Shown here one piece after another: positions 9,662 through 62,033 of a stretch of DNA of 64,000 bases. The first letter of the stretch is position 1. Each line of letters starts with the position of its first letter. The notes beneath the pieces were generated by a model. The model was not told the DNA's origin. It saw only the letters and a list, made by a program, of their open reading frames with translations, and did not search any database. Source of the stretch: Rebecca billardiae RCC1528 (Eukaryota; Protista; Haptophyta); the NCBI GenBank assembly GCA_965240325.2, contig OZ251252.1, positions 886,025 through 950,024 on the forward strand, written 5' to 3'. Position numbers and translations under genes: made by a program.

Positions 9662-9825
9662 CGCGCAGGGCCTGCCTGATGCGCGCCGGTTGGGCGTCGA
9701 TGGCCGCCAGGGAACCTTTGCGACGACGAAAGGGCCGGATTCCGCTTACCGGATCGGAGAATCTTTGGCCGCCGCTCGGCGCTGATTGGCCAGCCACGCC
9801 GAGCGCGCGTGCGCAGCCGCGCGGG

Positions 9826-27631: not shown

Positions 27632-28324
27632 TCAGCCATCGGGCCCGGAGCGCGTCTGCTCGCCAGCCCGCCCGTCATCTCCCCCTGCGCGCCCCACGCC
27701 CTCCTCCTGCCCGCCACCGCCACCGTAAGTCCCGCCCGGCCGCAGCGCCGCCGGCCGGCTGTCAAACTCCTCCGCGGCGGCGATCCAGCTGGGCGCGCTC
27801 GCGGCGGGCACCCTGGAGGCGAGGAGGAACTCCGTCACGCCATCGAAGTGCACGCCGTGCCCCACCACGCAGCGCCAGCGCACGAACACCGCGCGCGCGT
27901 GCAGGCACGGCACGAGCGGGCGGACGTACTCGAAGCGCGCGCCGGGCGCCAGCCGCGCAAAGGCGTCGTAGTGCGCCTTGATGGCGCGCTGGCCGGAGAT
28001 GGGCTGCGCGTCGGGGGCGCGGCCCGCGGCGTACAGCCGGGCCTCCGGCTCGAAGAGCGACGCGTCCACGCTCCCCGCGTTGAGCGAGTCGAAGAAGGCG
28101 TTGACGACCGCGCGCATGTCCGCCTCCGTGCGCTGCGCCTCGCGCGGCGCGACGCTCACGCTGATGGCCGCGACCGTCGCGGCGAGGGCCCAGGCGAGCA
28201 CGCACGCGAACGCGCCGGCGAGCAGCTGCCGACCGTCCGGCGGCTTCACGCTGCGAAGCACCGGCCTGCTGCGCTGGGCTCGCTGGGCAGCCTTGGCCGG
28301 CGGGAGCACGGCCATTGTCGCCAT
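27632..28324 (-). CDS. Membrane-anchored SnoaL-like/NTF2-fold protein
   Basis: TM segment LLAGAFACVLAWALAATVAAISV, then MRAVVNAFFDSLNAG..SLFEPEARL...PISGQRAIKAHY...VFVRW...FDGVTEF. Confidence 0.7.
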   Translation of the reverse strand: MATMAVLPPAKAAQRAQRSRPVLRSVKPPDGRQLLAGAFACVLAWALAATVAAISVSVAPREAQRTEADMRAVVNAFFDSLNAGSVDASLFEPEARLYAAGRAPDAQPISGQRAIKAHYDAFARLAPGARFEYVRPLVPCLHARAVFVRWRCVVGHGVHFDGVTEFLLASRVPAASAPSWIAAAEEFDSRPAALRPGGTYGGGGGQEEGVGRAGGDDGRAGEQTRSGPDG

Positions 28325-33182: not shown

Positions 33183-35004
33183 ATGCCACGCAAGCGCGAC
33201 GACGACTCGGACGACGAGGTGGAGCGGCGGCGCAAGAAGCGCACGCGCGAGGTGCGCGCGCCCTCGTGAGCCGCAGCCGCTGCTGCCGCCGCGCCGCGCG
33301 TGCCGCGCGCGCCGAGCCGCGCGCGAGCGCGCGCGCCGGCGGCGGGGGCGGGCGCGCGCGGCACAGCTCGCACCGCGGCCGCTGCGCGTGCGCGGCGCGC
33401 GCGTGCGCACGCGCGCGCGCGGCGCCGCGCGGCCGCCGCTCGCCGCCGGCGTGCGGCGCGCTTGGAGGCTGTCCGCACGGCGGCCGCGGCCGCGGCGGCG
33501 GCGGCGGCGCGCGGCGCGCGGCGCGCGCGCGGCGAGTGTGGCGCGTGGGCTCGTGCCGCGCTGCCGCCCGCGCTCACGCCCAGCCGCATCCGCCCATGCG
33601 CGTGCTCGCCCCCGCGCCGCTGCTCGTGCGCCATTGCTCCCGCCGCCGCCGCCGCGCCGCACCGCGCCGCCGCGCCGCGCCGCCGCGCCGCGCCCGCGCG
33701 CCGCCGCGCCACGCAGCGCCGTCGCGACGACTCGGGCGGCTCGGACGACGGCGGCAGCGGCGACGACGAGCGGCGGCGCTCGCGCAAGGCCCGCTCGCGC
33801 CGCCGCCGCGACGACGGCTCGGACGACGACTCGGACGACGGCGGCCGCGAGCGCCGTCGCTCGCGCCGCCGCGATCGCGACGACGGCGGCGGCGACCGGG
33901 GCCGCCGCCGCTCCGCCGACGCGGACTCGGACGCGGAGGGGCGCGAGCGGCGGCCCCCGCCGCCGGCGGGTGGCGGGGCTGGCGCGTACCGCGGGCGCTC
34001 GCCCTCGCCGCCGCCGCGCGACCGCGCGCCGCCGCCCCCGCCGCGCGACGGCGGTGGCTACGGCGGGCCGGCGCGCGGTGGCATGCACCCGGGGGGCGCG
34101 GCGCCGCTGCCGTCCGCGCCGCCGCCGCCGCCCGGCGGGTACGGTGGCGGCGGGCTGGGCGGTGGGGGCGGGTACGGCGGCGGCGGCGCGTACGGCGGCG
34201 GCGGCGGCTACGGCGGCCCGCCCGGCGGCGCGCCCGCGTACGGCGGCGGCGGTTACGGCGGTTACGGCGGCGGCGACGGTTACGGCGGCGGTTACGGCGG
34301 CGGCGGGTATGGCAGCGGCGGCGGCGGCGGATACGGCGGCGGCGGCTACGGTAGCGGCGGCGGCGGCGGCGGTGGGCCGGAGGAGTGCCGCGACTTCAAG
34401 GTGCGCCCGCGCCGCGGCGCGCGCACGCGCGCGTGCGCGCGCCTGCCCGCTGCGCGGCCGCCCTCGGCCGTGCGCGCGCCCCAGCGGCCGCCGCGCGGCT
34501 CCGGCCCAGCCGCGCGCCGCCGCGCGCCGCGTGCCCCGCCCCGCCCGGGCTCACACGCACGAAGCCCGGCCCCGCGCCGCCGACCGCCTCGCCCGTCGCG
34601 GCGCAGATGGGCCGGTGCCAGCGCGGCAGCAGCTGTCGTTTCTCCCACGCCGGCGCGCCGCCCGGCGGCGGCGGCGGCGGCGGCGGGCCGCGTGCTCCGC
34701 TCGGTGGCGGCGGTGGCGGCGGCGGTGGCGGCGCGGCGGGCGAGCCCCCGCTGTGCTTCGACTATCAGCGCGGGCGCTGCCACCGCGGCGACCTCTGCCG
34801 CTTCCGCCACGTCGAGAACTCGGGTGCGCGCGTGCGCGCGTGCGGTGCGTGCGCGCTGCCGGCTGCGCGCTCGGCGGCGGGGCGGCGCGTGCGCGTGGGC
34901 GCGCGTGTGAGTGTGCCGCGCCGCCCTCGCGCAAGCTCACCGCCCCTCCGCCTCGCGCCCGGCGCGCGTGCGTGCGCTCCGATTGGCGTCGGCGCCGCCG
35001 AGTA

Positions 35005-35040
<36 letters not shown>

Positions 35041-35231
35041 TTTTTTGGTGACGATGACAGCGGCCGTGGGCGCGGCGGCGGCGGGCGCGGCGGCGGGCCG
35101 CCGGACGTGCCGTTGCCGCCGCCGCCGCCGCCGCAGCCCGCGGACGGCGACGGCGGCCTGCCGCCGCCGTCCGAGCTGCCGCCCAACCCCGCGCGCGAGG
35201 ACGGCAGCGCCGACGGCGGCGGCGGCGCGCC

Positions 35232-35275
<44 letters not shown>

Positions 35276-35364: not shown

Positions 35365-36703
35365 GCTGGGTGGGTGGGAGTGGCGCTGTGGGCGCAAGGC
35401 GGGGGCGGGCGCCGCGTGCGAGAGCGAGCCGCCGGGCCGCCGGCACGCGGCGTGCCGCTCCGGACCCCGGGCTGCAGCCGGCTACGGCGCTGCAGCAAGT
35501 GGCTGCGCCGCCAACGGCTGCGCAGGCTTGCCCGCCCTGGCCGCACGCGGCCGGCTCGTCCGTTGGCGGCGCAGACCGGGCCGCCGATCGATGCTTCGCC
35601 GGTCGGCCGCGCGCGCCGGTCGGTCGGTCACGGCCGGCGCCTCGCCCTCTGCCGCCTGGCCGCCGCGCTGGCAGCGGCATGCACTCACTACTCAGATGCA
35701 GAGTGCCGGCTTCGTCGGGGCTTGCCGCCCGCCAAGGCGCCAGCCCGGAGCCCCGCGCCGGGTCTGAGGCGCGCCCGGGCCGGGCCCGGCGGCGCGGCCG
35801 GCCATTTCCTGAGGGCGTGCTGCGGCTGACGAGACAGCTCCTGTCGCGTCCATCCGCGCGGCGCGCGCGTTCCGCGCGCGCGCTAGTTTATTCGTGCCAC
35901 GCGCCGACGCCGCGGCCGGGGCGCCGCCCGGTCTAACAGTTTCGTAACGTCGTCATCATCATCAGCAGACATCATCACATCGCACGCGGCGCCACGGCGG
36001 TATTGATGATCATGATGATAATTGAACTCGCTCGGCCGAGCGCGCGAGCCTATATATATATAAAATAAATATTAGTATTATTATTATTATTGATGATAAT
36101 TATTATATATATTATAATAATACTACTTATTAATATATTTTATATAATATATAGTTCCGGCGGGATCAGCAGACGTGAGACGATCGGTAACTCAGCTGTC
36201 TCCGATAGGCGATTAGCGATAGTGCTGGCTGTAGCCTGTTTGACTTTATTAATATTAATATAGTAGTCTGTACGTACAATCCGTCAAATACGATGATACT
36301 GTACTGCTGCTGTCCGATATATCGGTCGTCGTCCTGCGAGTGGCCCAGTAGAGTCGTGTCGTATCGTTACTCGCACGAGCGGCGCCGCAGGGCCTGGCAG
36401 GCCAGAACCGTCGGACCGTCCCGGCACGGCCACGCGCCCGCACCCGGGTGCCCGCGGGTCAGCGCGGACGGGCGGCCGCGGCGCCGCACAGTGCGCGTGG
36501 CTCGACAGAGCTGGCTGGCACGCCGCGGCGCGTGAGAAACTAGGCGCGGCCGGTGGCTCCGCGGGCTCGCTGAGCCTCGCGCGACCGGGAGGGGCGTGCG
36601 CAGAAGGAGCACCCGCGCGTGTAGTACGCCGCCGGGTGGCGGCGGCTCTGAGTGCGCTGAGTGCTGAGCGCTCTGACGGTCTGCGAGAGGGCGGCGCGGC
36701 GGC

Positions 36704-37180
36704 TCAGGCGCCGCCGATGAGGTGGTGCGGGCCGAGCACGAGGTTGAGGTGGCTGCCCATCACCACGCCGCAGCTCTCGAGGCTCGCGCCCTCGTCGAGC
36801 ACCTTCCCGTCGAAGATGAGCCGCTGCACGTCCTCGTCGATCCCCTCGGCAAAGTGGATCTTGGACATGACGGCGTGGACCGAGTCGGTGGCCTGCACGC
36901 GGAGGGAGACGGTCTTGCCGGTGGGGCGGTCGATGGTGATGTCCATGCCCGAGACGGCGTGCGGGCCGAGCACCAGGCTCAGGTGGTCGCCCTCGTGCAC
37001 GCCGTAGTCGGCGAGCGTGTGGCTGTCGTCGAGCACCTTGCCGCCAAAGATGAGCCGCTGCGTGTCGTCGTCGGGGCCGGCGAGGTCGTGGATGCGCCGC
37101 TTGACGCCGGCAACCGCGTCGGTGGGCTGCACCCACAGCTCGAGCGTCGCGCCCGTCGGCCTGTCCACGGTGATCTTCAT
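36704..37180 (-). CDS. Tandem di-ubiquitin-like protein (158 aa) ending ...LIGG-A
   Basis: Two beta-grasp units: MKITVDRPTG...QRLIFGGKVLDDSHTLADYGV...LSLVL and MDITIDRPTGKT...QRLIFDGKVLDEGASLESCGV...LNLVL. Confidence 0.9.
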   Translation of the reverse strand: MKITVDRPTGATLELWVQPTDAVAGVKRRIHDLAGPDDDTQRLIFGGKVLDDSHTLADYGVHEGDHLSLVLGPHAVSGMDITIDRPTGKTVSLRVQATDSVHAVMSKIHFAEGIDEDVQRLIFDGKVLDEGASLESCGVVMGSHLNLVLGPHHLIGGA

Positions 37181-37270
37181 CTGCTCGGGCGGTCGGGGGT
37201 TGCGGTGTTGTGAGGCTGGGCGTGCGCGGCCGGGTCTGCGCTTTTCGCGTGTTCTCGCGTGCGCGAGAGC

Positions 37271-37325
37271 TGATTGGCCGGCGTCGGGATGGCCCAACCA
37301 GGGCCCAGCTCCATCCGCCAATCAG
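37271..37325. promoter_or_regulatory. Pair of oppositely oriented CCAAT boxes upstream of the di-UBL gene
   Basis: tgattggcc at ~37272 and gccaatcag at ~37317. The same motif occurs upstream of other genes (9783, 32655). Confidence 0.45.
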
Positions 37326-37630
37326 CGCGCGACAAACTGCCTTGGCCTGCTTGCCGCTGACGAAGCGAGCCAGTGATTTACGGCTACCTCGGTGAGTATC
37401 TCCCTTGCTTGAAGCCTGGAACGGGGGTTGACCTATGAGCGGGCTCCACCCACTTTACCCGCGGCCGGCCTTGGAAATAATGAAAGTGTGGTAAGTAAGT
37501 GCCGAGCGGGATGTCTGCTCATATGACGAACACATCCTCGCCGGCCAAGGCCCGCGTGCAGCGCGCCGCCACCGGCACCGCGCTGCGCCGCTGCGGGACG
37601 CGGACGGCGTGCGCAGGCCGTGCGTGCGCC

Positions 37631-39292
37631 TCAGAACGGCGGCGGTGGCAGAGGCGGCGGCCCGGCCGTGCGCGCGGCCTTGTGGGCGCCAAACGCGCCG
37701 CCCGCGCCATCGAGCCCCACGCCGTCGCCCTCCTCCCCGCCGCCCTCCTCCTCGCCCTCGCCCTCGCCACCGCCGCCGCCGCCCTTGGGCGCGCCGCCGC
37801 CGCCGCGCTTGGCGCCCGCCTGCGCCTTGAACTTGCCCACGCGCTCGATCGAGTGCCGGTACGGCGCGCTCGGGTCGAGGCGCGCGCGCCCGGCGGCGAG
37901 CTCGTCGGCGGAGGGCAGCGGCGCCTCGCAGTAGCGGGAGAGGTGCGCGCCGCGGTAGCCCTCCCTGCGCCCGCCGCCGCCGCCGCCGCCGCCGCCGCTC
38001 GCGGCGCCGCCGCCCGGCCCGGCGGCGGCGGCGGCGCCGGCGGCTGCCACGCCCGCGCCGCCACCGCCGTGCAGCAGCGCCGGCGGCGGCGGCGGCAGCG
38101 GCGGCAGCGGCGGCAGCGGCGGCGGCGGCAGCCCCGCGAGCACCCCGCCCGCCTCCGCGCCGGCACCACCGCCAGCCCCGCCCGCCAGCCCCGCGCGCGC
38201 CAGCAGCGCCATCGCCTTCTTCTTGCGCCGCACGTCGCGCTTGCGCTTCTGCACGAACCACTCGTGTACTTTCTCTGGCGGCAGGCCAGTCTGTAGCGCG
38301 AGCGCGCGCTGCGCGGGCGGCGTCGGGTGCGGCGCGGCGATGAAGGCGCCGAGCAGCACCGCGCCCACGATGCGCTCGTCCATCTCCGACTGCTTCTGGC
38401 TGCGGCGCGCACACAGCACACCACGGCCGCGGGCACGCACGGGCACGCACACACGGGCGCACGCGCGCACACACACGCGCACACACGCACACACACACGC
38501 ACACACACGCACACACACACACGCACGCACGCACACACACACACACACACGCACGCACGCACGCACGCACGCACACACGCACGCACACACACACGCACAC
38601 GCACACACACACACACACGCACGCACGCACGCACACACGCACGCACACACACACACGCGCACACGGGCACGCACGCGCGGCGGCGGCGGCGGCGGACGCG
38701 GCGGCGGGCAGCGCGCATCTCATGAGCCCGCCGCCGCGCACGCCGCGTGCGCACGCGCGGCTCTCGGCGCCTCGCGCGCGCGCGGCGCGCCAACGCACGC
38801 GAGCTTGCGCCCCATCTCCTGGAGTTCACGGCCCAGCCCGTCCGCGCGCCGCTCGAGCGCCTTGGCCTCGCGCGGCGTGAGCACGGCGGCGGCGCGGCTG
38901 CCGCCGCTGCCCGACCGGGCGCCGCCGAGCTTGGTGCCGCCCGGCGCGCGCGCGCGCTTGGTGGGCGTGGTGGCTGCGGCGGCCGTGGGCGGCGCCGCCG
39001 CCAGCGCCACCGTGCCACCGCCCGCGCTCGCCAAGCCCGCGGCCGCCGCCGCGTGCGCGGCGCCGGCGGCGGCGCCGGGCGGCCGGGATGCAAGCACGTC
39101 GTTGGACAGCGACGCGAGGTCGGTGAAGTGCGCGCTCGGCGGCGCGAGCGCGGGGTCGGCGGCGGGGAGCGTGGGGAGCATGGGCGCGCTCGAGAGCGCC
39201 GCGTGCGCGCCGAGCGGCGCGCACGCGCCCATGCCGCCGCCGCCGCCGCCCAGCCCCGAGTGGTGCGCGCCGCCGTCGCCCAATGGCTCCAT
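37631..39292 (-). CDS. Homeodomain-like transcription factor, 2 exons
   Basis: Exons 39292-38799 and 38399-37631 (GT-AG intron rich in CA/GT repeats). The segment [40 protein letters not shown] has homeodomain helix 1-3 spacing. Confidence 0.75.
38445..38675. repeat. Compound (CA)n/(CGCA)n microsatellite in intron
   Basis: Seen directly. Similar intronic tracts occur at 5773-5890, 43805-43860 and 60730-60790. Confidence 0.9.

Positions 39293-39488: not shown

Positions 39489-62033
<22,545 letters not shown>

Follow-up and report, generated by a model that had tools for sequence, protein, structure and literature searches.

Conjugated proteins built of two ubiquitin-like (UBL) domains in tandem, here called di-UBL proteins, have been reported in vertebrates and in the Bil systems of bacteria (PMC9722776; PMC11354881), and according to a review ISG15 is known only from vertebrates (PMC9722776). 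Translation leaves the Gly-Gly of FAT10 free, and BilA, a two-UBL protein, is trimmed by a protease dedicated to it before being conjugated through the C-terminal Gly (PMC11354881). The vertebrate tags, ISG15 and FAT10, and the bacterial ones are both tied to antiviral defence. FAT10, a mammalian di-UBL modifier, is activated by UBA6 and its internal junction is uncleaved; ISG15 is induced by interferon and infection and has an E1, an E2 and an E3 of its own (UBA7, UBE2L6 and HERC5). Two ubiquitin-family units also stand side by side in ubiquitin-RUB fusions, in which unit 1, canonical ubiquitin, is released by cleavage and unit 2 resembles NEDD8 and has the tail ALRGG. Literature searches beyond vertebrates and bacteria, protists included, turned up no relevant description of a tandem UBL modifier.

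The subject here is an open reading frame (ORF) of a haptophyte-like alga, lying in a 64-kb stretch of DNA that as a whole is referred to below as the window. If its product proves to be a conjugated di-UBL tag, it would be an independent case from a marine alga, implying that the design evolves repeatedly from ubiquitin, and it would give access to defence or stress signalling at the post-translational level in a group with blooms ended by giant viruses. If it is not conjugated, it would be a further ubiquitin-fold protein, specific to its lineage and of modest importance. The modifier idea rests at present on one sequence.

The locus, its coding evidence and its surroundings

At 36704-37180 on the minus strand of the window is an intronless ORF of 158 codons and a stop, a complete CDS as judged by the reading frame, Pfam and GC by codon position. 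Its product begins MKITVDRPTG and ends LVLGPHHLIGGA directly before the stop. The Pfam ubiquitin family (PF00240) matches in two stretches with an E value of 4.3e-31 and 106.9 bits (cut-off 25.4), the better of them covering residues 3-71 with a model of 72 positions, and Rad60-SLD matches with an E value of 2.2e-22, best over residues 79-148. The two divergent UBL units of the first-pass annotation are accordingly two full-length ubiquitin-family domains, a result well outside the reach of chance.

The length of the ORF is by itself no evidence for a gene, as long ORFs come cheaply at 80% GC: mean GC of the window is 79.9%, and the same locus is crossed in other frames by a 163-aa and a 198-aa ORF. 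Set against these overlapping frames, it is only the di-UBL frame that has domain matches and a gene-like composition by codon position. GC at its first, second and third codon positions is 0.70, 0.40 and 0.975, and that of the flanks is 0.67-0.75 overall (0.675 in the 200 nt upstream of the CDS and 0.745 in the 400 nt downstream). A coding scan by sliding stop-free windows of 60 codons, with thresholds of GC3 >= 0.9 and GC3 minus GC2 >= 0.4, marks 36731-37210, which coincides with the ORF and is the sole strong block of coding composition between approximately 32.4 and 38.2 kb. Preferred codons make up 73% of the di-UBL codons, versus 72% in the window's other coding-like blocks (3,889 codons). 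The protein is absent from a collection of 15 billion proteins, and so the gene seems to be unannotated so far.

The 47 in-frame codons 5′ of the ATG have GC3 of ~0.69 and GC2 of ~0.65, that is, no codon periodicity, and there is an in-frame stop at 37322-37324; together these place the start of the CDS at the Met that matches Met1 of ubiquitin. They bear also on the suggestion that the ORF belongs to a larger gene as its terminal exon, its UBLs serving as a C-terminal module as in OASL. The gene that comes to mind is the next one upstream on the same strand, with its homeobox exon of TALE/KN type at 38201-38410 (Pfam Homeobox_KN, E 5e-6). That exon is a point in favor, but the Met of unit 1 is exactly at ubiquitin position 1, the stop intervenes, the codons between stop and ATG lack coding periodicity, and two CCAAT-type boxes lie between, so that a larger gene has very little probability. 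The boxes are an exact inverted pair of GCCAATCAGC at 37269-37278 and 37317-37326, 89-146 nt 5′ of the ATG and 38 nt apart. There are three exact copies of this motif in the 64 kb, the third being at 9781-9790. GCCAATCAGC matches the NF-Y-type CCAAT box, and the pair may be promoter elements of the di-UBL gene. At the other end, approximately 350 nt past the stop codon, the stretch at 35901-36351 is the most AT-rich of the window. Its GC falls as low as 28%, and in it are small palindromes, AT/ATA microsatellites and, on the minus strand, an AATAAA; it is a candidate 3′ end or terminator region.

The neighborhood has other features. Beyond the homeobox exon, a (GCAC/CA)n tandem array occupies 38433-38676 and yields Cys-Val runs in spurious ORFs, and a coding-like block at 27761-28270 (minus strand) has a SnoaL-like domain (Pfam SnoaL_2, E 2e-6). 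On the opposite strand a giant multi-exon gene for a HUWE1/UPL1-type HECT ubiquitin ligase extends over approximately 43831-62012 (plus strand), with DUF913 at 43831-44400, UBM at 56732-56971 and HECT at 60212-62012. It is of housekeeping type, and that it starts ~6.6 kb from the di-UBL gene is probably coincidence. The small gene cluster is flanked on both sides, at 33285-35273 and 39574-43546, by stretches of 83-89% GC with degenerate CGG/GCG-type repeats and GC-only tandem repeats of 18-39 nt. No second copy of the di-UBL is present within the window and there is no Rfam match at the locus. A mobile-element origin was considered and rejected, since neither inverted repeats at the ends nor direct repeats at the flanks were found apart from low-complexity GC matches.

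The two units, their relatives and their origin

Unit 1 is formed by residues 1-78 (36947-37180, minus strand) and unit 2 by residues 79-158 (36707-36946, minus strand). With a canonical ubiquitin repeat (P0021:1-76) as reference, both align without gaps over positions 1-71, with 46% identity to ubiquitin for unit 1 and 44% for unit 2; identity between the units is 56-58%. The gapless alignment bears out for both units what had been noted of single residues: Ile44, Lys48 and Val70 are kept, together with the entire QRLIFxGK stretch that includes Arg42, and Leu8 is replaced by Pro. The sequence Arg72-Leu-Arg has become Gly-Pro-His-x-x-x, with loss of both Arg72 and Arg74. Unit 1 ends LVLGPHAVSG and its tail is two residues longer than that of ubiquitin; the linker GPHAVSG (residues 72-78; 36947-36967, minus strand) has Ser-Gly, and no Gly-Gly, before Met79. 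The tail of unit 2 is longer by three residues. It ends LVLGPHHLIGG, and the Gly-Gly is masked by one Ala (tail GPHHLIGG plus Ala, residues 150-158; 36707-36733, minus strand), the Gly-Gly codons being at 36710-36715, the Ala codon at 36707-36709 and the stop at 36704-36706. Both ends are thus as the first-pass annotation had read them, as is the replacement of RLR by a longer tail that contains His, the increment of three residues being that of unit 2. The His content of the protein is rather high (10 of 158 residues); His is common to both units at three positions, ubiquitin 31 and 66 and the tail, and the tail of unit 2 has His-His.

AlphaFold2, supplied with a 26-row alignment, predicts two beta-grasp domains with pLDDT of about 70-79. 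Unit 1 has strands at residues 2-6, 12-16, 41-45, 48-50 and 66-71 and a helix at 23-34, and unit 2 has strands at 79-84, 90-95, 119-123 and 144-149 and a helix at 101-112; in both, the predicted secondary structure has the order strand-strand-helix-strand-strand-short helix-strand. The pLDDT is below 50 for linker residues 73-77 and tail residues 151-158, and both segments are predicted to be flexible or disordered. How the domains are oriented relative to each other is undefined, hence the low pTM of 0.41.

Searches of protein sets, metagenome contigs, viral contigs and the ESM Atlas found no orthologue. Against a set of 5.8 billion proteins the whole protein retrieved only P0001, which is 99% identical, and matches at the level of ubiquitin, and neither unit 2 alone nor a two-unit profile found anything specific. 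In a scan of 1.84 billion representatives, the 150 top-scoring matches listed were, except for P0001, long poly-UBL proteins, which come to the top because repetition raises the score; a 158-aa orthologue scoring below ~224 bits would rank beneath them, so this blank is a weak one. The best 80 loci in JGI metagenome contigs, searched with the protein and the two-unit profile, are at most 49% identical, and the 13 that were translated have ordinary ubiquitin-like units without DRPTG or GPH. IMG/VR viral contigs gave no orthologue, and the ESM Atlas, searched by features and by shape, gave generic polyubiquitin clusters only. The di-UBL appears to be lineage-restricted, as the first-pass annotation had supposed. 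Among the metagenome contigs, one (Ga0308146_1021151; L031:340-570) has polyubiquitin repeats joined ...RLRGG-A-MQIF..., with one extra Ala between monomers. Such an insertion is a marker of polyubiquitin genes in Cercozoa and Foraminifera, and it is unrelated to the di-UBL.

P0001, the sole closer sequence, differs by Val49Met and keeps the entire tail, Gly-Gly included. Its source is a 1,274-bp Logan contig (L001; run ERR14847148) that is colinear with the window from 37357 to approximately 36090 and shows no sign of being a transcript. Within the 477 nt of the CDS there are two SNPs, one silent and one replacement. Outside it there are one upstream SNP, an 11-bp indel of slippage type between the two CCAAT-type boxes and a change of microsatellite length in the AT-rich island. 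Most simply, L001 is another strain or haplotype.

Fifteen derived states relative to ubiquitin are common to both units: F4T, K6D, T7R, L8P, E18Q, S20T, I23V, Q31H, P37D, Q49V, E51D, N60G, I61V, E64G and T66H. Both tails have in addition the GPH insertion after LVL, and these shared features together point to duplication of a single, already diverged derivative of ubiquitin. The duplication was a tandem one of long ago. The ancestral unit probably ended GPH-x-x-x-Gly-Gly, and unit 1 probably dropped one residue and one glycine later, at what is now the junction. A fusion of ubiquitin with RUB/NEDD8 was rejected on account of the 15 shared derived residues, the shared GPH and the units being mutually closest at 56-58%, in a test that compared the units with ubiquitin and with each other and set NEDD8 apart by description only.

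The age of the duplication can be gauged from silent sites. The same codon is used at 31 of the 42 identical degenerate residues, and 27.7 +/- 2.8 would be expected with silent sites fully randomized under the codon usage of the window. As observed and randomized sharing are about the same, silent sites are essentially saturated and the duplication is old. The nominal Nei-Gojobori dN/dS between the units, 0.8-0.9, was for this reason rejected as a measure of constraint: with silent sites saturated under strong codon bias it is uninformative, on the constraint of surface residues as on the rest. Other features are more telling. There is no indel between the first 74 codons (222 nt) of the units, despite ~89 substitutions, for which the probability is ~0.01 at one indel per 20 substitutions. 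All 15 positions of the ubiquitin core are hydrophobic in both units, and 12 of them in unit 1 and 11 in unit 2 are identical to ubiquitin, versus 36-38% identity elsewhere (Fisher p of 0.007 and 0.017). The frame, the fold core and the host codon usage have been preserved long-term.

These data meet the most skeptical reading of the locus, a silent or decaying copy of polyubiquitin or of a ubiquitin-RUB gene with an ORF that survives through the rarity of stop codons at 80% GC. What speaks for such a copy is that searches gave no orthologues, that the overlapping long ORFs leave length with little meaning, that the nominal inter-unit dN/dS is near 0.8-0.9, and that diversity relative to L001 is no lower in the CDS, with its 2 SNPs per 477 nt, than in the flanks. 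However, in a decaying copy the GC3 (0.975) and GC2 (0.40) would both have drifted toward the ~0.7 of the flanks in the time that 55% amino-acid divergence takes, codon preference equals that of the other coding blocks of the window, no frameshift has accumulated over the ~89 inter-unit substitutions, core residues are selectively kept, and the 15 shared derived states exclude the variant in which two ancestors were fused. Lack of indels, the kept core and the AlphaFold2 fold argue strongly against decay, which is very unlikely. The decaying ubiquitin-RUB fusion that the first-pass annotation had set against its own proposal is, on the same grounds of codon composition and preference, core, indels and shared residues, unlikely. 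The ORF looks like a real, native, single-exon gene.

Possible roles of the protein

The reading tentatively preferred is that this native two-domain protein derived from ubiquitin is used as a conjugatable modifier. The di-UBL would stay in one piece, since the junction reads Ser-Gly-Met and not Gly-Gly-Met. A hydrolase would remove the terminal Ala; activation of the Gly-Gly so exposed would follow, and then its linkage to target lysines, in the manner of ISG15 and FAT10. Residue 72 is a major determinant of selectivity between ubiquitin (Arg) and NEDD8 (Ala), and Leu8, Arg72 and Arg74 are read by the E1 for ubiquitin and by deubiquitinases. With Arg72 and Arg74 gone, Leu8 changed to Pro and the tail lengthened, the E1 for ubiquitin and ordinary deubiquitinases are unlikely to accept the di-UBL, and a separate enzyme of E1 type and a separate protease would be needed. 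Several features are like those of modifiers. The protein stands alone and is made up of UBL domains only, with a terminal Gly-Gly plus one residue; as in type I modifiers, the tail is flexible (residues 151-158, with pLDDT below 50) and its Gly-Gly is masked by a short extension. Gly-Gly is kept only at the true C-terminus, where the stop is one residue on, and is lost at the internal junction. The Gly-Gly and stop at this end, and the GPH common to both disordered tails, are the few features that speak for conjugation in particular.

The tail can also be seen otherwise. At such divergence, the chance of both glycines being retained was put by estimate, not calculation, at roughly 0.4-0.5; that glycine codons are favored in GC-rich DNA is counted against the Gly-Gly as a signal. 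The single residue after it may simply be inherited from the 3′ end of polyubiquitin, and a tail three residues longer with a Gly-Pro base may fit no E1 at all. A functional di-UBL that is never conjugated is thus a serious rival, held only a little less readily than the modifier. It would work by non-covalent binding, much as the tandem UBL of OASL does, for instance as an adaptor or decoy or by regulating proteins that bind ubiquitin or are linked to the proteasome, and its Gly-Gly-Ala would be an unselected relic of polyubiquitin. The evidence for a real gene under constraint fits it equally well, the residues read by the E1 for ubiquitin and by deubiquitinases are lost and the tail lengthened, and invention of a new E1 is, to our knowledge, rare. 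Tandem UBLs that have diverged and lack Gly-Gly occur commonly in uncharacterized eukaryotic and metagenomic proteins (P0004, P0006, P0139 and P0057), and one of the structural matches is the tandem UBL of chicken OASL (7sbi). Yet the GPH in both tails, the Gly-Gly at the C-terminus only and the stop one residue later are the pattern expected of an end that is used, and nearly all the stand-alone ubiquitin-domain-only proteins ending in Gly-Gly that we know of are conjugated.

Another way for the C-terminus to be used is for the protein to be a poly-UBL precursor, cut after the Ser-Gly of the junction and after the terminal Gly-Gly to give two monomers that act separately. Descent from a head-to-tail repeat of ubiquitin type is in keeping with this, as are the Gly directly before Met in unit 1 and the same GPH base in both tails, and the precursors of UFM1 and Atg8 are cut after a single Gly by proteases of their own. 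But hydrolases of ubiquitin type require Gly-Gly, and the tail of unit 1 is one residue shorter than that of unit 2 and has Ser as its penultimate residue; a precursor is unlikely.

For the conjugatable modifier there is a practical corollary. No Lys or Arg follows Lys126 in the protein, and trypsin would leave on a target a remnant of 31 residues, not Gly-Gly, so standard diGly proteomics would never detect conjugates of it. The fullest form of the proposal adds to ISG15 and FAT10 a third, independently evolved tandem-UBL modifier of eukaryotes, in a haptophyte-like alga: derived from ubiquitin, with an extended arginine-free tail containing His, served by its own protease and E1 paralogue, and conjugated, possibly under viral attack or stress. 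Taken with all these parts, it is doubtful.

Comparison with known tandem ubiquitin-like proteins

Among solved structures, linear di-, tri- and tetra-ubiquitin come nearest by sequence and by fold, with identities of 43-44%. Linear di-ubiquitin, or the polyubiquitin precursor, is the best match of all, over ~149 residues and with Foldseek E values of ~1e-19 to 1e-20. In common with polyubiquitin there are head-to-tail beta-grasp repeats, a Met starting each unit and one residue after the last Gly-Gly. In contrast to the identical or nearly identical repeats of polyubiquitin, those of the di-UBL are only 44-46% identical to ubiquitin. The junction is Arg-Gly-Gly-Met in polyubiquitin and GPHAVSG-M, with Ser-Gly-Met, in the di-UBL, whose tails have the GPH insertion and lack Arg72 and Arg74, and whose residue 8 is Pro instead of Leu.

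ISG15, the chicken OASL tandem UBL and FAT10 rank after the di-ubiquitin chains, at 21-25% identity. The likeness to ISG15 and FAT10 in the first-pass annotation therefore stands for architecture, in the tandem UBLs and their size, and falls for sequence; it is, so far as such identities tell, a matter of architecture and not of descent. ISG15 also has two tandem UBLs in a single chain of ~155-165 aa, its structures 1z2m, 7s6p and 3rt3 are among the matches, and it is an uncleaved precursor with a masked C-terminal Gly-Gly, as the Gly-Gly of the di-UBL is masked. However, there is no orthology, the tail is HHLIGG where that of ISG15 is LRLRGG, and the di-UBL was derived from ubiquitin independently.

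FAT10 (UBD) shares the tandem UBLs and a non-basic hydrophobic tail ending Ile-Gly-Gly, the FAT10 tail being CYCIGG. Its structural match, 7pyv_C, is 23% identical, below all the di-ubiquitin chains, and the di-UBL tail is longer and has an extra Ala after the Gly-Gly that in FAT10 is free.

Plant ubiquitin-RUB/NEDD8 fusions and diverged polyubiquitin-like genes are likewise two-unit ORFs of the ubiquitin family, of ~150-160 aa, and clusters of these kinds were among the nearest in the ESM Atlas feature search. Unlike the units of the fusions, those of the di-UBL are mutually closest, with 15 derived states in common. BilA, of the Bil anti-phage systems, is set apart by description, being bacterial and encoded in an operon with its own E1, E2 and DUB, and it is not derived from ubiquitin at the level of sequence similarity that the di-UBL has. 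By the tests run, the di-UBL is a member of none of ISG15, FAT10, polyubiquitin or ubiquitin-RUB. On present comparisons it is best placed within the ubiquitin family as something new, a tandem UBL of independent derivation whose extended tail is unusual.
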